Virus record (IMG/VR): IMGVR_UViG_3300021962_000021
Location: 62,001 to 126,000 of that record
Direction: 5' to 3' (one strand)
DNA length: 64,000 nt
Below the pieces are notes generated by a model. That model was not told where the DNA came from. It did no database searches and was given only the letters and a program-made list of their open reading frames with translations. Made by a program: the position numbers and the translations under genes. Below, piece after piece: positions 36,333-62,680 of this stretch. Within the stretch, counting starts at the first letter, position 1; each line of letters begins with the position of its first letter.

Positions 36333-36374
36333 AGGTTACTGATTGTTCACTAAATAAACAACACATGGACGACG

Positions 36375-37401: not shown

Positions 37402-37403
37402 TA

Positions 37404-37884: not shown

Positions 37885-37894
37885 ATAAATTTAT

Positions 37895-38236: not shown

Positions 38237-38436
38237 GAAAGCCGGAATTAGTTAGAGCGGGTGAAGATTTATATGAGGTCATATATAAAGTTTCAGCATT
38301 TAAATTTTCAACGGATATAACAGGCGATAAAGCCGATATACTTAAACAATGGTTTGGTGCAGAAAAAATATTAAGAAATTCTCAAACGAATGAATATCTT
38401 TTTGTAAATTTAATACCTGAATTGGATTATGAGTAA
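38233..38436 (+). CDS. hypothetical protein
   Basis: ORF, start reassigned. Confidence 0.6.
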   Translation: MRKPELVRAGEDLYEVIYKVSAFKFSTDITGDKADILKQWFGAEKILRNSQTNEYLFVNLIPELDYE

Positions 38437-39109: not shown

Positions 39110-39141
39110 TAGATGTATATTTATATTTTAAAATAACATTT

Positions 39142-39240
39142 ATGACCAACAGAGAAAGAGCATCCAAAAACCGAAAGAAAATGCAAAAACAAAGTAGAAA
39201 GATTAATATCAAAAAAGGTATTCATCAAAAGCACACATAA
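39142..39240 (+). CDS. very basic 32-aa peptide
   Basis: MTNRERASKNRKKMQKQSRKINIKKGIHQKHT, between an ATATTTAT motif and a terminator. Confidence 0.5.
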   Translation: MTNRERASKNRKKMQKQSRKINIKKGIHQKHT

Positions 39241-39263
39241 AAATCTTGCATGCCATGTAACCC

Positions 39264-39326
39264 AAAAGGGACACCCTAAAAAGTGTCCCTTTTATTTTGT
39301 AATATCGAATATTTTTTGTATATTTA
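39264..39326 (+). terminator. intrinsic terminator followed by promoter (TTTG 39296, TATATTTA 39319)
   Basis: AAAAGGGACAC/GTGTCCCTTTT. Confidence 0.7.
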
Positions 39327-39330
39327 ATGA

Positions 39331-39870
39331 ATGAAAAAAATATGCGCATATTGTGGACAAGATACTTATCATGTCGATATTGAATACCTTGTAGGATATA
39401 ATCATTTGAGTTGTGCATTGGCAGCAGAACAGAAAGCAGAACAAATGCAAATAATAAATTGGAAAAAAATACAAGGTGAACGATTTGAATTGATGGGTGC
39501 ATCGTTTTGTTTTGGTAGAGTTTATGAAAATAGTCAGGCCTACTTCACTGAAATAATCGAAACCGCTGATAACGATATTGTATTTCGTGTCAAACTAACT
39601 AAAATGGTTGGTGAATTTAATTTGGAAATAGAAGATACAAAGAATATTTTAAGTTCAAAAATTAGAAGAATAATAAGACCAAACGAAATAAAATCTTTAC
39701 AAAACTTTATTCATATCGCTTGTGATTCGATTAACAAAAATCAAGTTATTAAAACATATTGTTCTTTGCTCGGTATGATGCAAGATGAAATTAGAAGTAA
39801 AAGAAAAGCAAAAACAATATCAGGAAACACAAACTTTAATATGCCTGTTTCACAATCAATAAAATGGTAA
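39331..39870 (+). CDS. hypothetical protein with N-terminal Zn knuckle
   Basis: CAYC...HLSC. Confidence 0.65.
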   Translation: MKKICAYCGQDTYHVDIEYLVGYNHLSCALAAEQKAEQMQIINWKKIQGERFELMGASFCFGRVYENSQAYFTEIIETADNDIVFRVKLTKMVGEFNLEIEDTKNILSSKIRRIIRPNEIKSLQNFIHIACDSINKNQVIKTYCSLLGMMQDEIRSKRKAKTISGNTNFNMPVSQSIKW

Positions 39871-39873
39871 ATA

Positions 39874-40350
39874 ATGAAAAAACTAATAACAATAATTTTA
39901 TTATTTGTGAGTGTTAATTTATACTCACAAACAAAAAAACCTTTAGGTGCAGTGGATAGTATTCCTGTTTTGACACCTGATACTACATTCAATAATTTCG
40001 TTTATCATTGGTTGGGTAAACCATATAAGTTAGGTGGCAAAACCGAACGAGGTATTGATTGTTCACAATTCAATAAGAGGTTGGCAATGGACGTGTACAA
40101 AATACAATTAGAAAATGTTTGTTATAGACAGTGGGACCAGACTGAAAGGATAAAGCAAGATAGTTTACAAATAGGGGATTTGGTATTTTTCAGGAGCAAA
40201 CAATCGCCTTCGGGTTGGCATTGTGGAACATACATTGGCGAAACAATGTTTATACATGCAGCAAACCGATATGAAGGTGTAAAGATTAGTTCACTATTAG
40301 AGCCAAATTACAAAAGAGCATATAAAGGAGCAGGACGAATTAAAAAATAA
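39874..40350 (+). CDS. NlpC/P60 (C40) peptidoglycan peptidase, secreted
   Basis: Signal peptide, PYKLGG, GIDCS, GDLVFF, HCGTY, FIHA. Confidence 0.92.
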   Translation: MKKLITIILLFVSVNLYSQTKKPLGAVDSIPVLTPDTTFNNFVYHWLGKPYKLGGKTERGIDCSQFNKRLAMDVYKIQLENVCYRQWDQTERIKQDSLQIGDLVFFRSKQSPSGWHCGTYIGETMFIHAANRYEGVKISSLLEPNYKRAYKGAGRIKK

Positions 40351-40355
40351 AAATT

Positions 40356-40898
40356 ATGTTTGATAAACTAATTGAAATAATAACTAGATTTTGGAATGAT
40401 ATTTTACCTTTCATTATAGTTGAACAATGGAATGAAGCTATACATTTAAGATTGGGTAAATATCATAGAACATTGAAGGCAGGTATTTGGATTAAAATAC
40501 CATTCTTTGATTCGATTATTGAAACAGCGGTAATTACACAAACTGTAAATTTGCCGGCGCAAACACTAACTACATTAGACGAGCAGGGAATTGTATTGAA
40601 AGCTTTGATTAGATATAGGGTGGTGAATGTAAAAAATTATCTTTTGAATGTGATGCACGCAAATGATGTATTGGTAGATACTACTATGGGAATGATTAGA
40701 GACATTGTTGAATTAACAACTTGGGCCGATTTGATTGATGTAAATGAACAAATAACTGCCGAAGTGAAAGAATTTGTAGAAAAATGGGGAATTGAAATTG
40801 AAAAAATAACAATAACCGATTTGGCAATTGTAAAAACTTTTCGTATATTAGGTGATGACATAAAACCTTTACCATTAAACGAATTTAACAATGGATAA
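40356..40898 (+). CDS. SPFH/band 7 (stomatin-like) protein
   Basis: LRLGKY, IPFFD, PAQTLTTLD, WGIEIEKITITD. Confidence 0.85.
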   Translation: MFDKLIEIITRFWNDILPFIIVEQWNEAIHLRLGKYHRTLKAGIWIKIPFFDSIIETAVITQTVNLPAQTLTTLDEQGIVLKALIRYRVVNVKNYLLNVMHANDVLVDTTMGMIRDIVELTTWADLIDVNEQITAEVKEFVEKWGIEIEKITITDLAIVKTFRILGDDIKPLPLNEFNNG

Positions 40899-41082
40899 AC
40901 AATATTCAAAACAAATGATAGCATGGGCTGAGGAAGCAAAACAATATTTAAAAATATCAGCATCAGTAATTAACGAAACGCCAAACGATTTGGAATTGGG
41001 GAATAAAATAAGACAAATGTATTGGAAGCATGAAAAAGAAAATGATGAGTTAATTGAAAGGTGTAAAAAAGAAACAAAATGA
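40891..41082 (+). CDS. hypothetical protein
   Basis: PNDLELGNKIR. Confidence 0.6.
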   Translation: MDKQYSKQMIAWAEEAKQYLKISASVINETPNDLELGNKIRQMYWKHEKENDELIERCKKETK

Positions 41083-41273
41083 AAAAAACAAAATGGTTTA
41101 TAGCAAATAACCGAACACAAAAAAACAAAGACATTGTAAACATTTTACCATTTATTAAATTATGGTATAGTGAAAATTACTTTTTAGAAACAGGAGTATT
41201 AACACCCGCATTTGGAATAGCAATTAGTTGGTTAAAATGGAATTACTATTTTACTATGCAAAAAGGATATTAG
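41079..41273 (+). CDS. hypothetical protein
   Basis: ORF. Confidence 0.6.
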   Translation: MKKTKWFIANNRTQKNKDIVNILPFIKLWYSENYFLETGVLTPAFGIAISWLKWNYYFTMQKGY

Positions 41274-41274
41274 T

Positions 41275-41829
41275 ATGAAAATCAAAGGTTGGGAAAAAAT
41301 AAGTGGATATACATACAAAGGTTATTCAATAGTTAATCCAATACATAATGCGGACGAAACTAGATATGAAGCAACTATATTAAACTTAAACTTACCGCAA
41401 AAACCAAAATGGGAATTGACTGTATTGACACCCGCACATAAATTTAAACATGATACCAATTTTAGTATTATTGTGAGGGATGACGAAAATCGTTCTACAA
41501 TAAATTCAGTAGATAAAAAAAGGATGGCATCAATTTCAATTTTCAGAAACACATTTGAGGAAATGATTGATAAATTATTGAGTATGAGGTTGACATCTGC
41601 CGGTGTAACTGCAAGTAGTCATTCAATAAATATGAATGCATATGCCACCAAAACAATCAATCCTAAATTATATGGACCTGTTAAAGTTACAAATACCGGT
41701 GGATTATTTAGCACGATACAATCAAATGGAAACAATGTTGTATGGGACCCGAATACTAATTTACCAAGTTCAATGTTAATTGCAATAAAAGATTTACAAA
41801 AACAAATTGATGAGTTAAAAAACAAATAA
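41275..41829 (+). CDS. hypothetical protein
   Basis: ORF; C-terminal LIAIKDLQKQIDELK coil. Confidence 0.65.
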   Translation: MKIKGWEKISGYTYKGYSIVNPIHNADETRYEATILNLNLPQKPKWELTVLTPAHKFKHDTNFSIIVRDDENRSTINSVDKKRMASISIFRNTFEEMIDKLLSMRLTSAGVTASSHSINMNAYATKTINPKLYGPVKVTNTGGLFSTIQSNGNNVVWDPNTNLPSSMLIAIKDLQKQIDELKNK

Positions 41830-42026
41830 TGAAAAATAAAAATAAAGTGGCATTATTTAAAGAACTAAAAGAAATCAGAGAACAAATACTTTACTGGGAA
41901 AAATATCAGGGAGTAAACTGGTTGGGTAAGTGGGCTCGTAGTGTTAGATTAGAAAGGTTGCACAAAAGGTATTCAATTATAGAAAGGAAAATTCAAAAAC
42001 TAAAAAATAAAAATAATGGTGAATGA
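41829..42026 (+). CDS. hypothetical protein
   Basis: ORF. Confidence 0.6.
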   Translation: MKNKNKVALFKELKEIREQILYWEKYQGVNWLGKWARSVRLERLHKRYSIIERKIQKLKNKNNGE

Positions 42027-42129
42027 TATTTTAATTATTGGCTTGATTACTATTCTAAGTTTTGTAGCAATATTTGGAACGATTGATATGTTAAGGCAAA
42101 TAAACAAATTGGAAGATAAAAATTAATTT

Positions 42130-42336
42130 ATGACTTACGATTGTCACGGTAAATCACATTCTTTTGTAAAAGAGGATTTTGAAAATTGGTTATTGGTTAA
42201 TCAATCCAAATTACCACTTGAAGTAGTTACAGGAAATTCAGAACATATGCAAAGAATAATTAAAGGTGTTTTGGAATTTTACGATTTTGATTATTACATA
42301 CCGCCAACAAATAATGGAGTTATTAAAATTATATAA
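42130..42336 (+). CDS. minimal Smr-domain-like protein
   Basis: DCHG...VVTGNS...NNG. Confidence 0.55.
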   Translation: MTYDCHGKSHSFVKEDFENWLLVNQSKLPLEVVTGNSEHMQRIIKGVLEFYDFDYYIPPTNNGVIKII

Positions 42337-42358
42337 ATAAAATAAAACAAAATAAGTT

Positions 42359-43072
42359 ATGGAATTAGTATTAGCAATTGTAGCAGTAGTAGTAGTATTC
42401 TTTATTGGATACATTGTGGGTGCAAAACAAATGAGTAAAGAACAATATGAAGGGTCGCTTGGTTCATACACACCTGGTGAAGTTAATTGGTCACCACCAA
42501 CAAGTTCATTTAATAGTGAAGTACCAGTAGAATGGTTGGCAAGTGGTGATAAAGAAAGAGCACTACATATAGCCGGAATTAAAGAAGCAAGTTGGGAAAA
42601 ACAAAAAGAGTGGGAAGCTGAAAGAAAAGTAAAGGTTGAAGAAAAATCTGCACTTAGTGATAAACAATTAATGGAATACATTGAAGCAAAGAATGAGGAA
42701 ATATTAGTTAAAGCAGGTATCAAACAATATGATAGAAATAAAGGAGTGGATGATTTAACTAAAAAAATACAATCAATTGTAACGACAGATGATATTGATG
42801 AGGTTCAAAGAGTTAAATTGAAAGCAGCAGCTGCAAGAAAAGAATATGAAAGGGAAAGGCAAGAACGAATTAAAATTGACTTTGATGCATTGAACTTTAG
42901 TAGAATATCCAATGAAGCTAGAAAACAAATAACCGAAATAGTAAAGCAGGATTTGGAAAACAAAATAAAAGAAATCGAAAAAAATACTCCTGAAATTGAA
43001 GAAGTCATTGAAACGCCAAAACAAAAAAATAAACGAAGTGAAAATAAAAATAGAAAATCCACATCACATTAA
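42359..43072 (+). CDS. membrane-anchored coiled-coil protein
   Basis: N-terminal TM followed by charged helices. Confidence 0.7.
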   Translation: MELVLAIVAVVVVFFIGYIVGAKQMSKEQYEGSLGSYTPGEVNWSPPTSSFNSEVPVEWLASGDKERALHIAGIKEASWEKQKEWEAERKVKVEEKSALSDKQLMEYIEAKNEEILVKAGIKQYDRNKGVDDLTKKIQSIVTTDDIDEVQRVKLKAAAARKEYERERQERIKIDFDALNFSRISNEARKQITEIVKQDLENKIKEIEKNTPEIEEVIETPKQKNKRSENKNRKSTSH

Positions 43073-43367
43073 TACAAAGAATATGTGTCTTGATGGGTCC
43101 ATTGTTGAAATATCTTATATTGGATTAGAAGAACGAATAAATGCATCGGATAAAATACCATATACTATTTACAAATTTGAAGGATATCAAAATAGAACTT
43201 TCAGTAAAATGGTAAAATTTGAATTACATACTGATATAATCGATAACAAAGTTCAAATGAATATACATCAAAACGGCGGAATGACATTTGGTAGTGTATA
43301 TGTCGACACGGTAAAAGATAGGGATGCATTGATAAACTATTTTATTGAGGAAATAAAAAGATACTAA
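43038..43367 (+). CDS. hypothetical protein, LxIxN family
   Basis: GTG start, KIKIENPHHI. Confidence 0.6.
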   Translation: MKIKIENPHHINTKNMCLDGSIVEISYIGLEERINASDKIPYTIYKFEGYQNRTFSKMVKFELHTDIIDNKVQMNIHQNGGMTFGSVYVDTVKDRDALINYFIEEIKRY

Positions 43368-50915: not shown

Positions 50916-50951
50916 AAAAGAGACCCCACCAAAAGTGGGGTTTTTCTTTTT
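50916..50951 (+). terminator. intrinsic terminator
   Basis: GACCCCAC/GTGGGGTT plus T tract. Confidence 0.7.
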
Positions 50952-51336: not shown

Positions 51337-51678
51337 GTGTTAAGTGAAAGAGTATATCAGAAAGCATCAGATGATTTTGGAACGCCAGTTGGTGTAGCAA
51401 AGATATTAGGTTATAAAAAGAAATCAGAACATATTGAAGAAATTTCACAAGAGAACTATAAAGACCTATCAAAACAATTAGATATTAATTGGATTATAGC
51501 AGAAACCGTTTTGGATGGTAATTACAAAGAATTACAAAGAGAGATATATAGATTAAGGAAAACAAACAAAAGATTAAAATCGGAATTAAGTATATATAAA
51601 AGAGCATTCGATATAATAAATGGCAAAGATAATACCAATAACGCAAAATCCACAAAGATACACACAACAAACGAATAG
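51337..51678 (+). CDS. hypothetical coiled-coil protein
   Basis: ORF. Confidence 0.6.
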   Translation: MLSERVYQKASDDFGTPVGVAKILGYKKKSEHIEEISQENYKDLSKQLDINWIIAETVLDGNYKELQREIYRLRKTNKRLKSELSIYKRAFDIINGKDNTNNAKSTKIHTTNE

Positions 51679-52783
51679 TTGGGTAATATCGGCTTCTCCC
51701 AATATCTCGCCAATCACTATTGAAAAAGGAATTTCTATCGGAAACCTTAAACCCGTATTAGAAGTGGATGGTATTATAGTGAAAGCAGATGATTGGTATT
51801 TGTGTTCGCAAAAGACAATAGATGCTTTACAAACTTCTAACAATCCACACTACGCAATAGAATCTAACGGTCCTATCAAAGTGAAAGATAAAGAGGTTTT
51901 GATGGGTAAGAGTATTAAGATAATAGAGATAGATGTAGATAAGTTAAAGAAAGAAGCAGAAGGGTTAGATTTCCAAAACCGTAAAGCTGCCGTTTCTTAT
52001 GTAGATTATATATTTGAAGGTGATACGCAGGACGGTGTTCCGGTAAACCTCATTCGACAAATCAATTATACACTTAACCCTACTATTGATAGACCCGTAG
52101 ATAAGTATGGATTACATTCCTTTCAGTTAGGGGATGATGATACTATATACTCTATTGATAAATTAAATACAGAAACAAAACAGTCCGATGGGACATTAGA
52201 TAAGAGTAAATTAGAAAACTTTCTTCAAAACTTACAAAATAGGCTTATCATACTCCGTAGTGATTTTAATATGATTAAGGATGTATTCTATAATGGAACA
52301 TTCCCTGATTCTCAAGTTACTATTGATTTCGAAAAGGTCGCAACTACTGGTCTAAGTGATACTGCTAAAGAAGAACCACCGGTAGTATTCAAGTATACTC
52401 AACTTGCTCAAGTGGTAGAAACACCACTTACTTCTACTTCCTCCGGGTCTGCGGATAATACAACCAATAATACCACTACTACCGAGCCTACACCATTACA
52501 ACCTGGTCAACCGGCTACAAACCCAACTCCACCAATCATCCAATTAAAGATGAGAAAGAAAAGAGATTTGCGTTCTAATACTATACCGGTGTGGAGAAAT
52601 GACCCGACCGTTGGTGATAAGGGTGGGAGAAAAAGGTTAATCAAAGAAGGTGATACATTTTGGGGATACTTCTTTAAAGATTGGGAACATGGGCAAAAGG
52701 TATGGGTTGTATATGAATCGGATAAAACTACCATTGTTGGATGGGGTGTTGCTGATAGAAACGATTTTGTCGATCCTGTATAA
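51620..52783 (+). CDS. hypothetical protein with T/P-rich linker and small C-terminal beta domain (possibly virion)
   Basis: 387-aa ORF. Confidence 0.7.
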   Translation: MAKIIPITQNPQRYTQQTNSWVISASPNISPITIEKGISIGNLKPVLEVDGIIVKADDWYLCSQKTIDALQTSNNPHYAIESNGPIKVKDKEVLMGKSIKIIEIDVDKLKKEAEGLDFQNRKAAVSYVDYIFEGDTQDGVPVNLIRQINYTLNPTIDRPVDKYGLHSFQLGDDDTIYSIDKLNTETKQSDGTLDKSKLENFLQNLQNRLIILRSDFNMIKDVFYNGTFPDSQVTIDFEKVATTGLSDTAKEEPPVVFKYTQLAQVVETPLTSTSSGSADNTTNNTTTTEPTPLQPGQPATNPTPPIIQLKMRKKRDLRSNTIPVWRNDPTVGDKGGRKRLIKEGDTFWGYFFKDWEHGQKVWVVYESDKTTIVGWGVADRNDFVDPV

Positions 52784-53206: not shown

Positions 53207-53785
53207 ATGGTTATAGATGTATATAACGGAAAATGGGGAGTTCCCGCGAAATGTGGTTCTCGATATTTTTCTAAAACCGTATTATTACTTAATTCACACA
53301 TTAATATAAATTATAGAGTTCCGTTTGAAAAATTAAACAAACTGGGATTAGAAGTGATTATAATACGAAATCCACTTTCACATTTAGAATCTGCTTTACA
53401 AACGGAAGTGATGGAGTGTTGGGATGATTCGGATAAAATTCTAAAGATATTATTAAAATTTTCCGATATACAATTTGGTGGAACACACTATCATCCACAT
53501 TTTTGTGAAAAAATATATTATATTTGGTATAATAGTGAATTGAGAATAGTGGATTTATCCAATCTTTCCGGATTTATGGAAGAAATATTGAAAACCATAC
53601 CATACAATCAAAATGAATACGATTTTCATACTGAACCAAATTATAAATCAAAAAAAGAAGTTTGGGATAAGTGCGTTGATTTATATCCTGAATTGATGGA
53701 TAAATTGATTAGATATACCCAAAGTGATATGAAGTATTATAATGCTTTATTGAATAAGGATAAGAGTTTAATTAAAATAATATAG
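53207..53785 (+). CDS. sulfotransferase-like protein (degenerate)
   Basis: PAKCGSR (5'PSB-like), IRNPLSHLESA (3'PB-like); ends KSLIKII. Confidence 0.55.
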   Translation: MVIDVYNGKWGVPAKCGSRYFSKTVLLLNSHININYRVPFEKLNKLGLEVIIIRNPLSHLESALQTEVMECWDDSDKILKILLKFSDIQFGGTHYHPHFCEKIYYIWYNSELRIVDLSNLSGFMEEILKTIPYNQNEYDFHTEPNYKSKKEVWDKCVDLYPELMDKLIRYTQSDMKYYNALLNKDKSLIKII

Positions 53786-53849
53786 GGTCTATCAATAGAG
53801 ATACCAAAAATTTTCTTTTAAAAAACGACCTCCCCCAACCCCCACCCCT

Positions 53850-53881
53850 TTTGGTAAATTCAAAAATTATTCGTATATTTG
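53850..53881 (+). promoter_or_regulatory. Bacteroidetes-type promoter of the tailoring-enzyme operon
   Basis: TTTG-N20-TATATTTG. Confidence 0.7.
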
Positions 53882-53897
53882 TTCATAAAACTAAACT

Positions 53898-54461
53898 ATG
53901 ATATTAGAAGATAAAGGTATATCGGTAATTCCAAAGTTTCTATCAAATGAAGAATGTGAATGGATTATAGATAAATGTCTTTCTGATTTGGATTTAAAAG
54001 ATGCGGAAGTATACAATACATATAAAAAAGAAAGTCAGAAAAAGACAAGAAAATCAAAAGTTGCATTTGTGGGTGATTTAAATAACATCAATACAAAAAT
54101 TACAAATGAAATATTAAAAAGAACACCGAAACAAAGAGGTTATGAATTATATGTTGAAAGTTTTCAATTTACAGAATATAATGTAGGCGATTACTTTGAT
54201 TGGCATTCTGATTCAAATGATAATATCTTTAAAGATAGAATATATACAGTTGTGATACAATTAAATGATGAGTATACTTCTGGTGATTTTCAATTAATGT
54301 TAGAAAATTCTATAACATTAAAACCAGGAAAAGGTAATATGTTTATATTTCCATCGGCAATATTACATAGAGTAAAACCCGTAGAATCAGGAAAAAGATA
54401 TTCATTAGTTAGTTGGTTGAAATTAAAAAAAATAGAAAATAATAAAACAGAATTGATATAA
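53898..54461 (+). CDS. 2OG-Fe(II) oxygenase (prolyl-4-hydroxylase-like)
   Basis: DWHSD, LHRVKPV, RYSLV; ends KTELI. Confidence 0.88.
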   Translation: MILEDKGISVIPKFLSNEECEWIIDKCLSDLDLKDAEVYNTYKKESQKKTRKSKVAFVGDLNNINTKITNEILKRTPKQRGYELYVESFQFTEYNVGDYFDWHSDSNDNIFKDRIYTVVIQLNDEYTSGDFQLMLENSITLKPGKGNMFIFPSAILHRVKPVESGKRYSLVSWLKLKKIENNKTELI

Positions 54462-55114
54462 TGGAATTTACAAAATATAATTTCGGGCCCGAATTAATGA
54501 AAACCAATATTGATTTGGATTTATGTAAAGAACTTCTATCCGTTGGGAGAAATGAAATTTTAATAGATAATAAGCTCGATTCCATAACATTTGATACATC
54601 TTACAAATATAGTTTTGAAAATGTAAGTTATTTTAAAAATAAAATTTCCGTTTATATAGAAAATTATATAAAAGAAATTGCCAAAATTAGAAATTTAAAG
54701 CCATTTCGATTTGGAATTAATATTGAAGATTTATGGATTAATTTTCAAAAAAGTAGAGATTTTAATTCTCCACATTTTCATGCATATGATATATCCTTTG
54801 TAATATATGTGGATATGCCGGATGAAATTAAAAATGAAAAAACTATTAAAAGAGGATTTCAAAATGGAAGTATATCATTTTTATATGGACAAAATGTAAA
54901 AAAATTTGATTCAAATGCACAAGAATTTTCAAATACGGTAAATAGTTATATGTCACCGATAACACAGATAAATCATTCACCGATTACAGGGGAAATGTTT
55001 ATATTTCCAGCGTATTTAATGCATTATGTTAGTCCATTTTTTACAAAAGATGTAGAACGGATATCAGTTGCGGGTAATGTCAGTTTAATAGATAATAAAA
55101 AAAGTATAATATAA
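54461..55114 (+). CDS. putative 2OG-Fe(II) oxygenase (TIGR02466-like)
   Basis: WIN, PHFH, FPAYLMHYV, RISVAGN; ends KKSII. Confidence 0.8.
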   Translation: MEFTKYNFGPELMKTNIDLDLCKELLSVGRNEILIDNKLDSITFDTSYKYSFENVSYFKNKISVYIENYIKEIAKIRNLKPFRFGINIEDLWINFQKSRDFNSPHFHAYDISFVIYVDMPDEIKNEKTIKRGFQNGSISFLYGQNVKKFDSNAQEFSNTVNSYMSPITQINHSPITGEMFIFPAYLMHYVSPFFTKDVERISVAGNVSLIDNKKSII

Positions 55115-55401
55115 TGAGTTTTAATCCTAAAGAAATTATTAATGCTTGGATTACATCATTCAACCCTAATTCAACACAAAAGAGTTTAGCAGAAGAACGT
55201 ATGAGCATTTGTATGAAGTGTGAGTTTAGAAAAGAAATTATACACAATAAAAAATGGTCTGCAATATGTGGTGGATGTGGATGTCCTTTAGAAAAGAAAA
55301 TATTTACAGACCAGGCCGGAACATGTCCAAAATCAAAGTGGAATAGTGTTGAAGAAAAATATATAAAAACTCTAAAAGTTAAAACTAAAACAATTATTTA
55401 A
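55114..55401 (+). CDS. small Cys-rich protein (DUF6171-like)
   Basis: RMSICMKC, CGGCGCP, CPKSKW; ends KTKTII. Confidence 0.7.
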   Translation: MSFNPKEIINAWITSFNPNSTQKSLAEERMSICMKCEFRKEIIHNKKWSAICGGCGCPLEKKIFTDQAGTCPKSKWNSVEEKYIKTLKVKTKTII

Positions 55402-55403
55402 TT

Positions 55404-56045
55404 ATGAAAAAAATTACGTTTGAAGATGGTGTAGATTTGTATATAGTAAAATTAGAAAATACAAAGTTACAATCTGATGTTTTAGGAAATTGTATATCAT
55501 TTTTATCTACCGCCAATTATGTTCCCCAAGATAATTATCCATATTTAAACGATTGGGGTAGTTTTGATTTTAAAAAAGAAATGATACCATCGAATTATAT
55601 TGAAGAAATTATTAAAATTTGTTTGAATGAATGTGTTGAGTTAGGTATAAAAGATGAACTGAATTTTAATAAAGTTAATATTAATGCTTGGATAAATGTT
55701 GTAAAAACTGGAAAACCAAAACAAAATAATTTTAAATATGGTGGTGATGTTAAATTACATAACCACATAGATTTGCAAAAAATTATAAATTCTTTTTATC
55801 CGGAATATACTTTTGTATATTATGCCCAAATGCCAAATAATCTATCAGATACGGAAGGCACTTTAATAGTAGAAGGTAAAAACAAAAAAAGATATTATTA
55901 TTTACCAGAAGAAGGTGAAGTGGTTATTATGAAATCTAATTTAGAACATTCACCAAATAATTCACCCAATTCAACAAAAAATAGAATTGTTATAGCGGGT
56001 AATGTAGGATTTGAATCTGCGAAAAAAATTAGTAGTTTAATTTAA
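55404..56045 (+). CDS. putative 2OG-Fe(II) oxygenase
   Basis: AWINV, LHNH, LEHSP, RIVIAGN; ends KISSLI. Confidence 0.7.
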   Translation: MKKITFEDGVDLYIVKLENTKLQSDVLGNCISFLSTANYVPQDNYPYLNDWGSFDFKKEMIPSNYIEEIIKICLNECVELGIKDELNFNKVNINAWINVVKTGKPKQNNFKYGGDVKLHNHIDLQKIINSFYPEYTFVYYAQMPNNLSDTEGTLIVEGKNKKRYYYLPEEGEVVIMKSNLEHSPNNSPNSTKNRIVIAGNVGFESAKKISSLI

Positions 56046-56082
56046 AAAACCAATATATTTATATAAATAAGACAATAAAAAA

Positions 56083-57618
56083 ATGAAAGCATTAATAATT
56101 GGAACGGATTTTTTAAAGGATGCATCCGGTAATTTAAGAATAATAGAAACAAACACAAATGTGGATGTTCATAACAAAATTGTTCCACAATTGGATTGGA
56201 ATACATTTAAGCAATTTTTAATAGATAATTCTATTACAAAATTGCATTTTATATATACGGATGGTAATTTTATAAATACGGAAAAAGAAAATGTATTTGA
56301 TACAACAACAGAAAATATATCTTTAAAAGATAAAATGAGTGAAATAATGGTTGAATTATCAGGCACATTCAACCACTATGAAGTTCCTAAAAATTCAATA
56401 ACAGTTCCATATATAGAAGATGCGGATGATGTATTAATACTGAGAACATCATATGATACTACTGCATTAGTAGATGAAAATTATGCAAAAGATAAGGTAA
56501 ATTTTCATAGAGTAATTTCAAATGAAACATTTGCACCAAACGTGTATTATCATTCAGAAACTGATACAAATCTTAATATAGACCAATTAGTAAATTTACA
56601 TACTACAGCCGGCGATGCACCGAATTATATTGTAAAAACAAGATATCCAAATACAAATTATTTAACTTATCCAAAGTTTTACAAAATACAATCATTGGAA
56701 TCTTTACAATCTTTAAAAGATTCATTAACAGAATTGGAATATATAGAAGAATACCACACACACCCGGATAATTTTATTGATAATAAAATAGGCGTAATAA
56801 GAAGTTTGGATATAATATATGGTGGAACATTAAGTATATTACATTTGGGTTCGTATATTATGACGGCCGGTGTTGAAAATGATGCGTGGGTAACCGAATA
56901 TGATACAAATGGTAAAATGGAACAAAATTCCAGAGTATTATGGATGAGTAAATCCCTAATAAGTAAATTTGGTACAACTTATATTTTGGATGATGATACA
57001 CCAATATTATATTCAGATGGAAGTTTTAAATATCCAAATCAAATTTTAGTTAATGATTCATTAAAAACGATAACTCTTCCTTGGGTTCCACTAAATGAAA
57101 CATCCGAAACAGGAGAAGTATTATATATGCCAGATTTGAATTCAGGAAGTTTCAGCTCTGACTTAGAATCATTTACTCAATCAAATACAACCGTAATTGA
57201 TTTAGGAACACAAACTAAAGAATCCCTAATGATTAGGGTAACATTGGAAAATGGTATAGTTTATGAAGATTTGCCGGCTAGTTCTATGTTGGTAGAGGAA
57301 TACGATACATTACAAACTACATTTGTATTTACAAATAGATTTAGAATAAATGATTCAATTGTATTTTTTGATTATGTGAATAATACTTTAGTAAAATCAA
57401 AAATAACAAATTTGGAAATCGTATATGTTAATAAAAAAATATATGATATAAATGTTGAAACAAATGATTTGTTTTTACCATTAGCAGATGAAACATTGGG
57501 ACTTACTTTTGTACAACACAACGGTACATGTTATGGTTGGTGTGGTGCTTGGATGTGTGCAGTTTGGTGTTGTAGTGCATGTGGTTTCTGTGGTGGCCAA
57601 CCTCCTTCAAAACTTTAA
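56083..57618 (+). CDS. circularly permuted ATP-grasp / Hint domain / Cys-Trp-rich tail fusion protein
   Basis: N-terminal GTDFLKD..G..IIETNTN then YIVK, YIEEY; Hint blocks ILDDDTPILYSDGSFK..I.VND, IYDINV, QHN; tail GTCYGWCGAWMCAVWCCSACGFCGGQPPSKL. Confidence 0.75.
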   Translation: MKALIIGTDFLKDASGNLRIIETNTNVDVHNKIVPQLDWNTFKQFLIDNSITKLHFIYTDGNFINTEKENVFDTTTENISLKDKMSEIMVELSGTFNHYEVPKNSITVPYIEDADDVLILRTSYDTTALVDENYAKDKVNFHRVISNETFAPNVYYHSETDTNLNIDQLVNLHTTAGDAPNYIVKTRYPNTNYLTYPKFYKIQSLESLQSLKDSLTELEYIEEYHTHPDNFIDNKIGVIRSLDIIYGGTLSILHLGSYIMTAGVENDAWVTEYDTNGKMEQNSRVLWMSKSLISKFGTTYILDDDTPILYSDGSFKYPNQILVNDSLKTITLPWVPLNETSETGEVLYMPDLNSGSFSSDLESFTQSNTTVIDLGTQTKESLMIRVTLENGIVYEDLPASSMLVEEYDTLQTTFVFTNRFRINDSIVFFDYVNNTLVKSKITNLEIVYVNKKIYDINVETNDLFLPLADETLGLTFVQHNGTCYGWCGAWMCAVWCCSACGFCGGQPPSKL

Positions 57619-57630
57619 AAATAATTAAAA

Positions 57631-57750
57631 ATGAAAGATAAAATAATTTCTTCGGAAATAGTATTAACCAATAACACCACAAATCAGGCCATTGCAACTA
57701 TTATGCAGCAGGTCGCAAACTTAATTTATACGGATGTAACTGGTTCATAA
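57631..57750 (+). CDS. 39-aa peptide downstream of the Hint fusion (not in ORF track)
   Basis: MKDKIISSEIVLTNNTTNQAIATIMQQVANLIYTDVTGS, fills the gap. Confidence 0.6.
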   Translation: MKDKIISSEIVLTNNTTNQAIATIMQQVANLIYTDVTGS

Positions 57751-57761
57751 ATTTTATTAAA

Positions 57762-58496
57762 ATGGTTATAAATAATTGTATTGTTTTTATACCAATACCA
57801 AAAAATGCATCTTGGTCGGTAGAAGATACTTGTATTGAATACGGGTTGGATTTAACATATCCGAATATTTTATGGGAAAATTCTATTAAATTTGGAGTAA
57901 AAAATCCAGAAAAACATATTCATTCGGATATAAATTATTTAATTGATTCGCTTGGTATGGATTTTGAATTTGTATGTATAATAAGAAATTCTACGGATAG
58001 ATTTATATCAGCTTGGAAATTTTTTATACAAGAAATAATTCAAAGTATATCCGAAGAGGGTTCAAATATCCTTAAAAATTTAGATAATAATTTTATAATT
58101 TCTTTTTTTAAAGACAACATATACGAATTCAAAAATGCGTATATATCTTATGAAACTAGAGTAAATCTCCTAATAAAATTATTAGAAACGGCGGGTGTAA
58201 TTCAATATTATAATATATCCGATGAATTTAAAAAAAGATACGCAATACACATTATGTCATTCGTATCGCAATATCAATGGATATCATCATCAAAAGTAAA
58301 AGTAAAAGAATTTCATTTTGATAGATTATATGAATTTGAAGATTATATATCAAAAAAACTTAATATAGATTTTAAGTTAATTCATAAAAATAAAACGCAA
58401 TTAGATTATTCTGCAATATTGAAAACCGATGAATTAATAAAATTTGTCGATACATATATTGATGGTTCATACAAAAGAGTTAAATCTATTATTTAA
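57762..58496 (+). CDS. sulfotransferase family 2-like protein
   Basis: FIPIPKNASWS, IRNSTDRFISAW, SQYQW; ends VKSII. Confidence 0.75.
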   Translation: MVINNCIVFIPIPKNASWSVEDTCIEYGLDLTYPNILWENSIKFGVKNPEKHIHSDINYLIDSLGMDFEFVCIIRNSTDRFISAWKFFIQEIIQSISEEGSNILKNLDNNFIISFFKDNIYEFKNAYISYETRVNLLIKLLETAGVIQYYNISDEFKKRYAIHIMSFVSQYQWISSSKVKVKEFHFDRLYEFEDYISKKLNIDFKLIHKNKTQLDYSAILKTDELIKFVDTYIDGSYKRVKSII

Positions 58497-59317
58497 TGAA
58501 ATTATTTACATTCGGTGATAGTTGGACCGAAGGAGTTGGTTCCGATTGGCAGGAAGAATTAAAAACCGAAGATTTAGAAGAAAGAACAAAAATACGTCAT
58601 AAATACGCATGGCCTACATTGTTATCAAAACATTTAAATATTCCTTTTGATAATTTTGGAATAGGTGGTTGTTCTAATAAAAGTATATTTGATGCAGTTT
58701 GTAATTCAGTAGATACCGATTTAATTAAAAAAGATGATTTGGTTGTTATAATGTGGAGTTCATCTTTAAGAGATTCTGTTCCATTTTTTCCTGATAATAA
58801 TTCCTGGCACTATTGGGGTGAGAGATATAAACGAAAAGAATATTTGTATAAAAAAGTATTTAAAAATACAAATATAACTACAAAATACGATAGAATAAAA
58901 AAAGAATATCAAGAATATTTTTTAGCAAATTTATTTACGGATGAATATTATCAAATCGTAAACCAAAATTATATTTTATATTTACAATGGATGTTTAAAA
59001 AAATTGGTATAAGATATATTTTTTGTGATGCATTTGATTTAATGATAAAAGATGATATTTCAAAAAACATAGATAAAACTAATCTAATTGATAAAAACCA
59101 TTATTGGGGTATTTCAAATAAAACTTTAAAAGATTTATTAATAAATACAAATAGAAAGGATGTGTGGGGAGATGGACAACATTGGAAAGATTTAACAGAG
59201 GGTAAACATCCTAACAAAAATGGATATAAATTAATTGCGAATGAACTATATGATTTTATATTAAATAAAAACATATTAACATATAAGACGAACAATATCG
59301 AAAATATTATTATATGA
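58496..59317 (+). CDS. SGNH/GDSL hydrolase-fold protein
   Basis: FGDSWTEG, NFGIGGCSN, HPNKNGY; ends ENIII. Confidence 0.8.
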   Translation: MKLFTFGDSWTEGVGSDWQEELKTEDLEERTKIRHKYAWPTLLSKHLNIPFDNFGIGGCSNKSIFDAVCNSVDTDLIKKDDLVVIMWSSSLRDSVPFFPDNNSWHYWGERYKRKEYLYKKVFKNTNITTKYDRIKKEYQEYFLANLFTDEYYQIVNQNYILYLQWMFKKIGIRYIFCDAFDLMIKDDISKNIDKTNLIDKNHYWGISNKTLKDLLINTNRKDVWGDGQHWKDLTEGKHPNKNGYKLIANELYDFILNKNILTYKTNNIENIII

Positions 59318-59859
59318 ATTATTATATAAACAATTTGTTTGATAAAAAAGAATGCCAATCTATAATAGAATTTGCAGAAAATAATGGCATACAATTTTCA
59401 TATAATCCAAATGAAGTATGGGATTGTAAAAGAATTTATGATGATGAATTTAAATCAAATATAATTCAAAAAATCAAAGAAAAATATAATAAAAATGAAT
59501 TTAAATTATGGTTTGATTTGAATAAATTTAATATAAAGGATGTAAATATTAGTTTGACAAAGTATTATGATAATAGATGGTTGGATTTGCATTTAGATAC
59601 TACATCACAATTTACAACAGTTATAGTTTTATCGGCCGGATTTAGTGATGGTAGCTTCGTATTATCCGAAAAAATGGATGATATAAAAAATGGAAATAAA
59701 TACATACTAAATATTGGTGAATCTATTTCATTTGATGGTAGTAAAACATATCACGGTGTAATGCCAGTCTATTCAGGTATTAGATATGCATTAAATATAT
59801 GGATGACAAATACAGATTTTAAATATTATCAATTAGATAAATCAAAAAAATTGATATGA
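59314..59859 (+). CDS. 2OG-Fe(II) oxygenase
   Basis: LHLD, YHGVMPV, RYALNIW; ends SKKLI. Confidence 0.8.
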   Translation: MNYYINNLFDKKECQSIIEFAENNGIQFSYNPNEVWDCKRIYDDEFKSNIIQKIKEKYNKNEFKLWFDLNKFNIKDVNISLTKYYDNRWLDLHLDTTSQFTTVIVLSAGFSDGSFVLSEKMDDIKNGNKYILNIGESISFDGSKTYHGVMPVYSGIRYALNIWMTNTDFKYYQLDKSKKLI

Positions 59860-60380
59860 ATATTTTAATAATTTCCTTACCAAGAACAGGTTCCACCGAA
59901 TTAGGTAAAAAATTAGCAATTGATAATAAATTGGTTTATAATTTTGAACCATTTAATCCATTTAATAAAATAAATACTCAAAATAATATTCATAATGTAG
60001 TTATAAAAACAATTATATTTCATAAACCAAATTCTATAAAAGAATCCAATAGAGTAGACTGGTTAATAAGTTTGATATCAAAATTTGAAAAAACAATTTT
60101 ATTAAGTAGAAGAGATTTAAAGGCATGTGCGGAAAGTTGGTCTTATCTAAACTATAAAATGAAAACATCGAATTTTTCATCTATATCACAATATCTTTGG
60201 GAAAAAACACCAAACTATGATGAAGCATTTTATAACATAAAGTTGTGGAATGATGAATTAAACTATATATCGCAAAAAACAAATATACCAATAACTTATT
60301 ATGAAGATATCTATGATTTAAATGATAAAAATAGATTGAGAAAAGGAAATAAAGATGATTATAATTACAATTTAATATAA
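59856..60380 (+). CDS. sulfotransferase-like P-loop protein
   Basis: SLPRTGST, EPF, RRD....ES, YYEDI; ends NYNLI. Confidence 0.7.
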   Translation: MNILIISLPRTGSTELGKKLAIDNKLVYNFEPFNPFNKINTQNNIHNVVIKTIIFHKPNSIKESNRVDWLISLISKFEKTILLSRRDLKACAESWSYLNYKMKTSNFSSISQYLWEKTPNYDEAFYNIKLWNDELNYISQKTNIPITYYEDIYDLNDKNRLRKGNKDDYNYNLI

Positions 60381-61444
60381 TGATTGATTTAAAAGATTAT
60401 ATATGCAAAGTTCCATTTGAAATATTGGAAATACATGATGAATCTTATTTTTTATGCTGTGCAAGTTGGTTAAAAAAACACTTACCAAAGAATCAACCTA
60501 TGAAAGATGTGTGGAATAGTGATGAGGCAAAGGATATTAGAAAATCGGTATTGAATGGTTCATATCTTTATTGTGATAAAAAACAATGTCCGTATCTATC
60601 TCAATTAATAAATTTAAAAACCAATAATTTAGGTCCTATAAAACATTATTCTCAAATAGACCCATCTTTTTTTAATAATTACAATTTTGAAACAGGAAAA
60701 ATGTATCAGGGACCAAAAACCATACATATGAGTTTTGATAGGACGTGTAATTATAAATGCCCATCTTGTAGAATAGAAATGATTGTTGCAAATAGTGATA
60801 AAATACAAAAAATAAATATAACAATAGAAGAAATGGAATCTCTATATGCAAACGATATAGAAATGATATATTGTTCAGGCACTGCAGACCCGTTTGCTTC
60901 CGTTTCATATAGAAATTTTTTAAGAAAATTTAATCCTAAAAAATATCCAAATTTAAAATCAATACACTTACATACAAATGCCAGTTTATGGAATAAGGAA
61001 ATGTGGGATAGTATGCCGGAAATACATGATTATGTAAAGAGTTGTGAAATAAGTATTGATGCTGGTTCAAAATTTACATACGAAAATGTAACAAGATTGG
61101 GTGGTAATTGGGATAATTTAATATCCAATCTTAATTTTATTTCAACCATAAAAAGTATACAAACTGTAAAATGTTCATTTGTAGTTCAACAATCTAATTA
61201 TACAGAAATGTCTGAATTTTTAAGATTAATTACTTTCATATTTGGTAATAAAACAAAAGTATTTTTTGGAAGAATAACTAATTGGGGAACATTTTCCGAT
61301 GAAACCTTTAAAATGATTGATGTGGGTAATGTGCTACATCCAGAACATTCTTTGTTTTTAGATGAGTTCAAAAAGGTAGCCACCAATCCATATGTATTTC
61401 ATAATATGTATGATTTAATAGAAATAAAAAAATCTATAATTTAA
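60380..61444 (+). CDS. radical SAM protein with N-terminal SPASM/twitch-like cluster (paralog of 32330..33529)
   Basis: CNYKCPSC, SGTADPF, SIDAG; ends KKSII. Confidence 0.88.
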   Translation: MIDLKDYICKVPFEILEIHDESYFLCCASWLKKHLPKNQPMKDVWNSDEAKDIRKSVLNGSYLYCDKKQCPYLSQLINLKTNNLGPIKHYSQIDPSFFNNYNFETGKMYQGPKTIHMSFDRTCNYKCPSCRIEMIVANSDKIQKINITIEEMESLYANDIEMIYCSGTADPFASVSYRNFLRKFNPKKYPNLKSIHLHTNASLWNKEMWDSMPEIHDYVKSCEISIDAGSKFTYENVTRLGGNWDNLISNLNFISTIKSIQTVKCSFVVQQSNYTEMSEFLRLITFIFGNKTKVFFGRITNWGTFSDETFKMIDVGNVLHPEHSLFLDEFKKVATNPYVFHNMYDLIEIKKSII

Positions 61445-61508: not shown

Positions 61509-62150
61509 ATGAAAACGCAACAAGAACTAGAAGCAAATTACGAAAAGTTCATTCAAATTCTAAAAAAATATTTCACAGGCGAAAGGTTAGAGAAATTACT
61601 CCACATGTATTCCGAAGATGAATTGGGAAGTAATCTAGCGGTATCACCGGCATCCGGCTCAACATTTTATCACAATGCATACATAGGTGGTTATATTGAC
61701 CATATATTTAATGTAACTAAGAATGCGCTTCGTATGAAGAAGTTATTTGAAGAAGCAGGTGGTAAAATTGATTTTACTGATGAAGAATTAGTATTCAGTT
61801 GTTTACATCACGATTTGGGTAAATTGGGTATTAAAGGTGAATTACACTATATTCCAAACGATAATGATTGGCAGATTAAAAATAACGGACATGTGTTTAA
61901 GAGAAACGATAAGATTTCTTATATGACACTTACCGATAGAACATTTTTTACTCTAAACCATTATGGTATTTCTTATAATGAGAATGAGTATTTTGCTATC
62001 AAACTTACAGATGGTATGTATGATGAAGATAACCAAAAGTATTTAGCCGGTCACGATATTAAAAAACAATTGAAAGGTAAATTACAATTTATTATGCATT
62101 GGGCAGACCACATGTCTACTGTGATTGAAAGACAAGATGTCAAAATTTAA
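61509..62150 (+). CDS. HD-domain phosphohydrolase
   Basis: PAS...HNAYIGGYIDH, LHHDLGK, HWAD. Confidence 0.85.
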   Translation: MKTQQELEANYEKFIQILKKYFTGERLEKLLHMYSEDELGSNLAVSPASGSTFYHNAYIGGYIDHIFNVTKNALRMKKLFEEAGGKIDFTDEELVFSCLHHDLGKLGIKGELHYIPNDNDWQIKNNGHVFKRNDKISYMTLTDRTFFTLNHYGISYNENEYFAIKLTDGMYDEDNQKYLAGHDIKKQLKGKLQFIMHWADHMSTVIERQDVKI

Positions 62151-62227
62151 TGACATTATTTCCTAAAAAAAGTTTGGTATGATAGTTGAATAATAATAGT
62201 ATATTGTTTAACAAAAAAATTAAAACT

Positions 62228-62623
62228 ATGTATTACACAAATTTTGACAAAGTATTAGAATCTATTTTTGAAAGTAACTCTCCAGTTTGGGAAAACAAAT
62301 CAACAACATTTGTTCCTTCTAAATTTGCAGTTGATGTAAAAGATGATAAAGCACACATTGCTTTAGCAGTGATAGGACATGACCCTAAAAACATTGAAAT
62401 CAATTGTTATGAAGATAAAATTGAAGTTACTGCAACAAAAGAGAAAAAAGATTCACAAAACGCAGTTGACCAGTTGATTGGAAACATTAAAGAAACAATC
62501 ACATTGGGTAAAGACTTAGATGGTAGAAATGCAAAAGCGGAAATTAAAAATGGTATCTTATCAATCTTAGTAGAAAGAAAAGAAGAATCCAAACCAAAAA
62601 AATTAACCTTAAAAGTTGGTTAA
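62228..62623 (+). CDS. small heat shock protein (Hsp20/alpha-crystallin)
   Basis: AEIKNGILSILV...KPKKL. Confidence 0.85.
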   Translation: MYYTNFDKVLESIFESNSPVWENKSTTFVPSKFAVDVKDDKAHIALAVIGHDPKNIEINCYEDKIEVTATKEKKDSQNAVDQLIGNIKETITLGKDLDGRNAKAEIKNGILSILVERKEESKPKKLTLKVG

Positions 62624-62647
62624 TTCAGTTATTTTTTGTATATTACG

Positions 62648-62680
62648 AAGGTAGGAGTTTTATAACTTCTACCTTTTTTT
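62648..62680 (+). terminator. intrinsic terminator
   Basis: AAGGTAGGAGTT/AACTTCTACCTT plus T tract. Confidence 0.7.

Follow-up and report, generated by a model that had tools for sequence, protein, structure and literature searches.

The gene cluster described here occupies positions 53207-61444 of a 64,000-nucleotide stretch of DNA, the window of our analysis, taken from IMG/VR record IMGVR_UViG_3300021962_000021, a 238,219-bp viral contig in which the cluster locus (L008) covers record bases 108083-129615. The window is AT-rich, with a GC content of about 30%, and almost all of its genes lie on the + strand. Twelve genes make up the cluster, all on the + strand and mostly abutting or overlapping by 1-4 nt, and among them is an intact open reading frame (ORF) for a 511-aa fusion protein in which an ATP-grasp-like domain is joined to a degenerate Hint domain and a Cys-rich tail, an arrangement that we read as a candidate self-releasing peptide precursor. 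The genes and the three segments of the fusion protein are given below with their family matches; "tagged" denotes a C-terminal motif, analysed further on, that is shared by nearly all tailoring enzymes around the fusion gene.

53207..53785, +: 192-aa protein with a P-loop-like motif recognised by eye; tagged, ..SLIKII
53898..54461, +: 2-oxoglutarate (2OG)-Fe(II) oxygenase of the prolyl-hydroxylase type, PF13640 (2OG-FeII_Oxy_3), Pfam 2.1e-15, PHROG 61 6.6e-37; tagged, ..KTELI
54461..55114, +: 2OG-Fe(II) oxygenase, PF13759 (2OG-FeII_Oxy_5), Pfam 2e-12; tagged, ..KKSII
55114..55401, +: 95-aa six-Cys protein, partner of the fusion gene, with invariant C33, C36, C52, C55, C57 and C71; tagged, ..KTKTII
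55404..56045, +: 213-aa 2OG-oxygenase-like protein, PHROG 81 4.5e-8, Pfam 3e-4 (below cut-off); tagged, ..ISSLI
56083..57618, +: 511-aa fusion protein
56083..56958, +: its N-terminal domain (residues 1-292), circularly permuted ATP-grasp-like, of the glutathione-synthetase type
56977..57522, +: its Hint-fold domain (residues ~299-480), with the terminal His479-Asn480 at 57517-57522
57523..57615, +: its 31-residue Cys/Trp-rich tail (7 Cys, 4 Trp), the putative released peptide
57631..57750, +: 39-aa ORF directly 3' of the fusion gene; untagged
57762..58496, +: 244-aa sulfotransferase-like protein with invariant S17, R75, R80 and S83; tagged, ..VKSII
58496..59317, +: GDSL/SGNH (DUF6071-like) protein, Pfam Lipase_GDSL 3.6e-7, DUF6071 4.4e-5; ends ..ENIII
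59314..59859, +: 181-aa 2OG-Fe(II) oxygenase-like protein, PHROG 61 1.5e-9; tagged, ..SKKLI
59856..60380, +: 174-aa weakly sulfotransferase-like protein, Sulfotransfer_1 1.3e-3 (below cut-off), PRTGST motif; tagged, ..YNLI
60380..61444, +: 354-aa radical S-adenosylmethionine (SAM) enzyme with an N-terminal Cys cluster, twitch-type; tagged, ..KKSII

The initial annotation of this DNA had listed four 2OG-Fe(II) oxygenases, three sulfotransferase-like proteins, an SGNH protein, a radical SAM enzyme with a twitch-like cluster and a small Cys-rich protein, set around a 511-aa fusion with a 31-aa Cys/Trp end, and most of this inventory holds. Two of the four oxygenases lie above the Pfam threshold and two more are recovered by PHROGs, the SGNH protein, the 95-aa Cys-rich protein and the composition of the tail are as described, and the radical SAM enzyme carries its CxxxCxxC motif as CNYKCPSC (residues 123-130) and matches PF04055 (1.4e-3) and the N-terminal twitch model N_Twi_rSAM of NCBIfam (2.2e-15), both under the curated cut-offs. 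The sulfotransferase-like trio is reduced. Moderate support exists for the 244-aa protein, whose profile matches heparan sulfate 2-O-sulfotransferase in the PDB (2.5e-4) over the region that binds 3'-phosphoadenosine 5'-phosphosulfate (PAPS) and one homologue of which matches Sulfotransfer_2 weakly; the 174-aa protein is a weak case, and the 192-aa protein has no family match in Pfam, PHROG or NCBIfam. Comparison by hhalign established no relation between either of the latter two and the 244-aa family.

The fusion protein was modelled with AlphaFold2 (AF2) on 59 homologues at a predicted local distance difference test score (pLDDT) of 86. Its homologues number 161 in a search of 5.8 billion proteins and its relatives in IMG/VR 273, and a profile of the N-terminal domain recovered 366 representative clusters (50% identity) among 1.84 billion, the domain being N-terminal in every one of them. 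The whole protein found no match in the Pfam, PHROG or NCBIfam libraries, and comparison with the PDB by sequence, whether as a single sequence or as a profile, returned only noise. Near and protein-level searches of 50,697 GenBank phages, made with the whole cluster and with its fusion, 95-aa and 244-aa proteins, found nothing. Among 185,579 cellular species genomes the sole match was a 5-kb contig (L088, JABJFP010000318.1) of a metagenome-assembled genome (MAG), with 29% identity over the N-terminal domain; it had been binned into a 'Methanobacteriota archaeon' MAG and is probably a mis-binned viral contig. The fusion family is almost entirely viral. Two of the IMG/VR loci (L036 and L046) are labelled GVMAG (giant-virus MAG), yet their gene content is that of the phage loci.

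Residues ~300-480 of the model take up the Hint fold that the initial annotation had proposed. Foldseek comparison with the PDB gave 57 matches at E<=1e-3, of which the 50 listed are all Hint domains, led by the hedgehog autoprocessing domain 1at0 (E 7.8e-8, TM-score on target 0.79) and including the bacterial intein-like (BIL) domain BIL2 6y75 and many mini-inteins, to E 1e-5. What the domain shares with inteins, BIL domains and hedgehog Hint domains is the common fold, together with the terminal His-Asn pair of inteins; canonical inteins, however, have Cys or Ser at position 1, a block-B Thr/His and a +1 nucleophile, and the phage Hint domain is without all three. In the 59 aligned sequences the position equivalent to intein Cys1 (301, in a register read visually from the common C-L-x-x-D/G-T-x-I/V motif) holds I in 38 and H in 17, with other residues in the rest. 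It is directly preceded by an invariant Y300. Block B lacks its Thr-x-x-His; the stretch reads T-L-E-N-G-x-x-[Y/W]-x-D-L-P-x-[S/T], and no His in it is conserved. The residue at +1 after the Asn is G, S, A or P in 171 of 284 sequences and Cys in only 10, and the first tail Cys stands at +2 or +3 in 218 of the 284. H479 and N480, which in the model come where the final strand of the fold ends, are present in 59/59 sequences (30-93% identity), as is D462 in 58-59, and His-Asn occupies this position in most of the 233 full-length members. When the degenerate Hint domain was compared by hhalign with the true Hint domains of relatives, the alignment covered no more than a repeat-like stretch of 26 residues (prob 7%), and the mapping of catalytic positions thus rests on motif reading and the fold match.

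The roles of intein residues, including the His-Asn pair responsible for Asn cyclisation and for cleavage at the C-terminal side, have been reviewed elsewhere (PMC4031507). With Cys1 and TxxH lost, splicing or formation of an N-terminal thioester would be impossible, and Asn cyclisation is the only intein step that could still take place. From the conservation of the pair we infer a putative cut after Asn480 by Asn cyclisation. Inteins, moreover, are mobile insertions, whereas the phage Hint is a permanent part of one family of proteins.

The N-terminal domain was also modelled separately (residues 1-290, AF2 pLDDT 86). Its top 11 Foldseek matches in the PDB are all eukaryotic glutathione or homoglutathione synthetases (E 3e-4 to 3e-2, prob <=0.99), and the significant ones are glutathione synthetases only (E 3e-4 to 1e-3). 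Eukaryotic glutathione synthetases are the classical circularly permuted ATP-grasp enzymes; they run to ~450-470 residues against ~290 here, and the identity between the two is 9-13% at a TM-score of ~0.4. Invariant in the family are D9, E22, N24, D113, R121, D125, D131, Y134, N181, K185 and R240; E22-x-N24, K185, E223 and R240, invariant or nearly so, are candidate Mg/ATP-binding residues picked by conservation. The E22-x-N24 motif lies near the N-terminus instead of the C-terminus, which would fit a permuted ATP-grasp. The search for distant relatives gave a D-Ala-D-Ala ligase by phmmer against the PDB at E 0.3 only, and no match in BFVD. With modest confidence in the model comparison, we call residues 1-290 ATP-grasp-like, a term that stops short of membership of the superfamily.

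The tail holds its Cys at 483, 487, 492, 496/497, 500 and 503, five of them invariant and one near-invariant, with aromatic residues between them and a usual end of ..K-[L/I/V]; 124 of the 155 tails have Lys at one of their four final positions. Where homologue bodies are 80-90% identical, the non-Cys identity of the tails is 0.38. The tail has no family match, toxin families included. The best PDB sequence matches are the plant Cys-rich peptides wisotide (E 0.054) and vaccatide (E 7.3), a likeness that we take as a probable resemblance in Cys spacing and not as homology.

A regex-based sort of the 233 full-length members separated several variant architectures. The Cys-rich tail alone ends 155 of them (median 32 residues, 6 Cys). 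In 29 others one or more true Hint domains follow the tail; this extra Hint has Cys1 and ..VHN, exceeds the Pfam Intein_splicing threshold in P0091 (3e-12) and is matched by the PT-HINT model of Pfam in P0091, P0105 and P0228. A further 28, the window gene not among them, carry after the tail a domain resembling the Peptidase S74 chaperone of tail fibres and endosialidases, to which it is likened by its start at K-S-D-x3-K, with the Ser-Lys dyad motif S-D-x3-K invariant in 18 aligned sequences, and by a match to PF13884 that in the five long variants scanned is below threshold (E 0.011-0.15) and always begins at profile position 1; the domain has no PDB sequence match. Peptidase S74 domains normally follow a fibre shaft, whereas in these 28 relatives the domain follows a Cys peptide of 25-30 residues. 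An S74-type cut at K-S-D-x3-K would leave a tail ending in ..K, about the normal tail end. The peptide is thus bracketed by putative self-processing modules in three independent layouts, and we regard this as the strongest indirect argument for its excision.

The initial annotation had further asked whether the neighbourhood of the fusion gene is conserved and whether the tail varies while keeping its Cys pattern. Both are borne out by what we observed: the tails diverge around a fixed six-Cys framework, and across 86 loci around fusion homologues of 30-100% identity the gene order of the window recurs nearly unchanged, down to 30% identity. The 95-aa partner is present in 77 of these loci, mostly directly adjacent to the fusion gene, followed by the 213-aa oxygenase (70), the 181-aa oxygenase (65), the GDSL protein (59), the 244-aa protein (54), the 174-aa protein (52) and the radical SAM enzyme (29). 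Relatives add a Trp halogenase (47 loci), a SET-domain methyltransferase, adenosine 5'-phosphosulfate (APS) kinase, DUF2061, a carbamoyltransferase and up to five radical SAM/SPASM genes, and an ORF of 37-49 aa directly follows the fusion gene in L001, L003-L007 and L091, with similar sequences in L001 and L004. The recurrence of the same neighbours in 86 loci suggests that the arrangement is more than chance. Flanking the cluster in the window are, upstream (51620-52783), a 387-aa untagged protein that matches no family, contains a low-complexity linker rich in Thr, Asn and Pro and is syntenic in ~20 loci, and, on the 3' side (61509-62623), a weak HD-domain-like protein and then Hsp20, both untagged and kept in 27/86 and 22/86 loci, respectively.

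Nearly all tailoring enzymes around the fusion gene end in the motif K-x-x-K-[S/T]-[L/I]-[I/L]-COOH, for which 642 non-redundant proteins give the consensus K(-6), K(-3), [S/T/K](-2), [L/I](-1), [I/L](0). In the window this tag is borne by 10/10 cluster enzymes as against 4/95 other ORFs (Fisher p 3.5e-11), and two of those four outsiders, encoded 20 kb upstream, are themselves related to genes of the system:

32330-33529, +: distal paralogous radical SAM enzyme, Pfam Radical_SAM 2.7e-7, 36-41% identity to the cluster radical SAM family of other loci; tagged, ..QKSLI
33531-34937, +: distal 468-aa protein, whose homologues lie near the fusion gene in other loci and are mostly tagged; tagged, ..KQTLI

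The remaining two, an 81-aa ORF at 16962-17207 (..NKLI) and a 68-aa ORF at 42130-42336 (..IKII), are far from the cluster. Over 85 loci the tag is found on 79% (upstream) and 69% (downstream) of the genes within 2 kb of the fusion gene and on 10-17% of those beyond 6 kb. The 2OG oxygenases, Trp halogenase, sulfotransferase-like proteins, radical SAM enzymes and 95-aa protein are tagged at 84-100% (213-aa family 97-100%, 181-aa 96%, 174-aa 91%, radical SAM 84%), with 75-100% for homologues of the 244-aa protein, and the best 120 homologues of the 95-aa protein all end in [S/T]-hydrophobic-hydrophobic. The corresponding figure is 0-13% for the fusion protein, APS kinase, DUF2061, carbamoyltransferase, HD, Hsp20 and 387-aa families. 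In one distant clade (P0192) the 95-aa partner beside the fusion gene is the only tagged neighbour.

Synonymous codons of the tag differ between orthologues, and the constraint therefore acts on the protein. A by-product of start/stop overlap or of AT-rich gene ends could be ruled out, since three tagged genes are followed by gaps of 38-113 nt, genes more than 6 kb away are tag-poor and the codons differ. That the tag is general to cyanophage oxygenase arrays was likewise rejected: none occurs in Syn9, and the match in S-MbCM6 is a lone oxygenase beside uvsY. The likeness to the eukaryotic KKxx retrieval signal we take as coincidence because the phage context is without membrane anchors; the tag also resembles a class I PDZ ligand. 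At the level of sequence, this distribution shows the tagged enzymes to form one putative functional set.

We propose, with a probability of roughly 45%, that the 511-aa protein is the self-releasing precursor and scaffold of a Cys-framework peptide and that the enzymes are recruited to it via their shared tag. The fusion protein would present its own tail to the modifying enzymes, and Asn480 would cyclise, as in the C-terminal cleavage of inteins, freeing the tail with a new N-terminus. Before or after this release the tail would be modified by the tagged enzymes, namely the 2OG oxygenases, the sulfotransferase-like, radical SAM and GDSL proteins and, in relatives, the Trp halogenase and SET lysine methyltransferase. 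The tag would dock every enzyme on a common partner, most economically the fusion protein, in place of the leader peptide of RiPPs (peptides made on the ribosome and modified after translation), and the ATP-grasp-like domain may activate a carboxylate, ligating or capping the peptide, or may bind C-termini. We favour the tail as the substrate because the tagged classes act on protein side chains and the tail offers matching residues, with Pro and Lys near its end, Trp or Tyr in the stretches that separate the Cys, and Cys as such. APS kinase is untagged, and its part would be no more than the supply of PAPS.

Several observations weigh against this proposal. The tail itself is modelled at low confidence (pLDDT <55). 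Five members have short, Cys-poor tails (e.g., ..HNPAPPPKL), and three others (P0228 at L091 1254-3554, P0233 and P0250) have the degenerate Hint domain followed by two or three true ones in tandem and lack a Cys tail, with junctions ..HN-AP-CF.. and ..HN-RS-CF.. and a protein end of ..VHNK; the Cys peptide is thus not universal in the family. Trp counts of the tails barely follow the presence of the halogenase (2.6 with and 2.1 without, a comparison confounded by phylogeny), and one halogenase locus has a tail without Trp. The ATP-grasp call of the initial annotation stands at the level of the fold, through the glutathione synthetase matches, but those matches are modest (TMq 0.36-0.43, rmsd 9-11 Å) and the sequence profile of the domain matched no ATP-grasp family in Pfam, NCBIfam, PHROG or the PDB. 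The distant clade has the fusion gene and its adjoining 95-aa partner with no recognisable tailoring enzymes, which suggests that the core of the system is the fusion/95-aa pair and the enzyme set an elaboration, and common descent alone can account for conserved gene order among related phages. Genes that make or transfer sugars near the cluster in some loci, and large fibre-like genes 3' of it in L001 and L003, mean that the enzymes may have other substrates. The partner of the tag, finally, is a guess: since no other untagged protein is there in every case, the fusion protein would be the simplest choice.

Fibres and sugars lead to the explanation in which the tail is never released and is a Zn- or Fe-S-binding module, the His-Asn pair is structural and the enzymes decorate fibres, other virion proteins or glycans. 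Virion decoration, which the initial annotation had named as an alternative, thus keeps some probability. Its C-x2-C-x2-C ending and six Cys do resemble metal sites, sugar-nucleotide enzymes, glycosyltransferases and a carbamoyltransferase lie nearby in several loci, and fibres recur around the system, as a 1408-aa Peptidase_S74 fibre-like gene (L003) and a 1661-aa gene (L001) after the cluster, as the tail-fibre genes that precede the dioxygenase array of Syn9, and as the fibre-typical S74-like chaperone domain of some family members. We nevertheless consider this explanation unlikely, given that a Hint domain stripped of its other catalytic residues keeps an invariant His-Asn exactly where it ends, as retained cleavage predicts, that the inter-Cys loops evolve far faster than the body, which is unusual for a structural metal site, and that the sugar enzymes and carbamoyltransferase are untagged where the protein-acting classes are tagged. 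The invariant pair bears equally on the idea that the Hint domain is a fossil, a decayed intein-like insertion in an ATP-grasp protein that now serves as a linker, within a cluster that is inherited gene order without a functional link. The loss of Cys1 and TxxH, the true Hint or intein-like insertions in the same gene of relatives, and the synteny that extends to the flanking HD, Hsp20 and 387-aa genes would all be compatible with such decay; yet a decaying intein should not hold His-Asn and Y300 invariant across ~366 representative clusters, and the tag marks exactly the enzymes around the fusion gene and not the syntenic flanks, which argues for a functional unit. A fossil is in our judgement highly improbable.

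Two further explanations give the C-terminus a different task. Glutathione synthetases ligate an amino acid to a peptide C-terminus, and sets of halogenases and oxygenases are also found in scaffold-peptide pathways. By analogy with pathways of the pearlin type (peptide aminoacyl-tRNA ligase, PEARL), the glutathione-synthetase-like domain could extend its own tail at the C-terminal carboxylate by one or more residues. The residue so added could be tailored by the tagged enzymes, and what is then set free could be a small molecule or a short peptide, the Cys stretch acting as a spacer or metal handle. The only structural relatives of the N-terminal domain catalyse just this kind of ligation, most tails have Lys near the end, and the members with short Cys-poor tails keep His-Asn and a short Lys-containing end; a six-Cys framework invariant over most of the family is hard to explain as a spacer, however, and no aminoacyl-tRNA-dependent or other ligase partner was seen, so that we hold this chemistry to be distinctly unlikely. 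A cassette akin to polymorphic toxins, in which the Hint domain releases a variable peptide against the host or competitors and the small downstream ORF confers immunity or serves as an antidote, draws on the pretoxin-HINT layout, where the Hint likewise lies directly upstream of a variable C-terminal module thought to be released, on the PT-HINT matches of relatives, on the fast divergence of the tail and on the constant position of a small ORF 3' of the fusion gene. Pretoxin-HINT proteins, however, deliver a toxin domain from behind a secretion or filament domain, whereas here a Cys-framework peptide of ~30 residues follows an ATP-grasp-like N-terminus without a secretion or trafficking domain, in a block of phage tailoring enzymes; the tail has no toxin family match, a single tail framework is kept in place of a swapping of unrelated domains, and the downstream ORF is conserved with no visible co-variation with the tail. 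The cassette, which we rate as very unlikely, concerns the action of the peptide and overlaps in part with the self-releasing precursor that we prefer.

Close kin of that precursor would be found among RiPPs such as the borosins (e.g., OphMA), in which the core is fused to a pathway enzyme, and the SCIFF peptides or ranthipeptides, which are Cys-rich and modified by radical SAM enzymes. The likeness lies in a C-terminal ribosomal peptide on a larger pathway protein, in the co-located radical SAM, oxygenase and other tailoring enzymes and in the Cys-rich core; the difference is that release would be autocatalytic through the Hint domain and that the enzymes bear a common C-terminal tag. As in RiPP pathways, we see a ribosomal precursor with a variable core and co-located, co-conserved tailoring enzymes (absent in the one distant clade). 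Family-library scans of the cluster detected no RiPP recognition element (RRE) domain, leader-like element or leader peptidase, and at curated thresholds the cluster proteins showed no homology to known RiPP precursors or maturases. We liken the system to a RiPP pathway with a predicted built-in release step.

Tandem 2OG-Fe(II) oxygenases with Trp halogenases have been described in phages, as in Syn9 gp41-gp54 (Iyer et al. 2010, PMC2938197), and the same work ties sulfotransferases to bacterial clusters of a related kind; peptides or secondary metabolites are the substrates that it predicts for such clusters (PMC2938197). The window oxygenases have cyanophage homologues at 28-42% identity and share the tandem arrangement; Syn9, however, is without a homologue of the fusion protein, its 95-aa partner or the 244-aa protein, and its array enzymes are without a common C-terminal tag. 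In Syn9 (L090, record 32454-43144) two Trp halogenases and about ten dioxygenase-like genes directly follow the tail-fibre and fibre-assembly genes, and several of the array genes, annotated as 'minor coat protein', 'DNA endonuclease V' or 'ferrochelatase', look like mis-annotated 2OG oxygenases.

Taken singly, the parts of the system are known, namely the Hint fold, the ATP-grasp-like fold, RiPP-type tailoring enzymes and phage dioxygenase arrays. Their combination, the reduction of a Hint domain to His-Asn as a fixed release device and the shared enzyme tag were found in none of Pfam, NCBIfam, PHROGs, the PDB sequences and the literature searched, in keeping with the statement of the initial annotation that the architecture was not recognised from earlier descriptions. 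By the features compared, the system qualifies neither as an intein nor as an ATP-grasp family of the canonical kind, nor as a leader-dependent RiPP cluster or a polymorphic toxin. It is conceivable, though we regard this broader idea as doubtful, that it embodies an organising principle of peptide natural-product synthesis, until now almost confined to viruses, with a peptide fused to its scaffold, a Hint domain cut down to Asn cyclisation and recruitment by tag instead of leader, and that jumbo phages thereby make, during infection, a conopeptide-like peptide with a Cys framework and many modifications.

Dioxygenase and halogenase arrays of phages have been known since about 2005-2010 and, to our knowledge, their substrate was never identified; the fusion family offers a concrete candidate substrate for one large group of them. 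If the proposal is true, ribosomal peptides would have, in a Hint domain capable only of C-terminal cleavage, a natural means of release that needs no leader, and a docking tag common to a dozen unrelated enzymes would bring a modification pathway together in a new manner; each could serve as a tool. It is the logic of tag docking that, if confirmed, would make the system new in kind. Widespread as it is (273 IMG/VR loci, 366 clusters at 50% identity) and confined to uncultivated large phages, the system may point to an unknown phage activity during infection.

With regard to the fibre-like genes of related loci, positions 14210-21542 of L001 encode the 1661-aa protein and then three proteins of ~370 aa, two of which end in ..SGHCGWR[T/A], and positions 15961-20187 of L003 encode the 1408-aa protein with its Peptidase_S74 match; both regions have a fibre-like look. 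The rest of the window is that of a large phage without close relatives among the 50,697 GenBank phages, and a 770-aa ORF within it has 33-35% identity to an uncultured 484-kb phage and to Microcystis phage Mel-JY01. A scan for sigma-70 promoters stayed at background level (109 found against 100 expected). Pattern matches in a consensus scan place terminator-like hairpins on either side of the cluster, and several recognisable phage genes and a set of tRNA genes lie upstream:

1133-3424 and 6615-6700, +: 16 tRNA genes (Cys, Met x2, His, Ser x2, Leu x2, Glu, Thr, Asp, Arg, Ala, Gly x2, Gln)
4480-5607: RNA ligase with a PHA02142 OB domain
7205-7969: metallophosphoesterase
14725-16041: MoxR/CbbQ-type AAA ATPase
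17590-18534: SPFH/Band 7 protein
25982-27076: ATP-dependent DNA ligase
50919..50945, +: terminator-like hairpin upstream of the unit, 11-bp stem and then a T run
62647..62676, +: terminator-like hairpin after Hsp20, a possible end of the transcription unit, 13-bp stem and then a T run

Fifteen of the 16 tRNA genes are packed into 2.3 kb, at the same place as a GC peak of 0.43.

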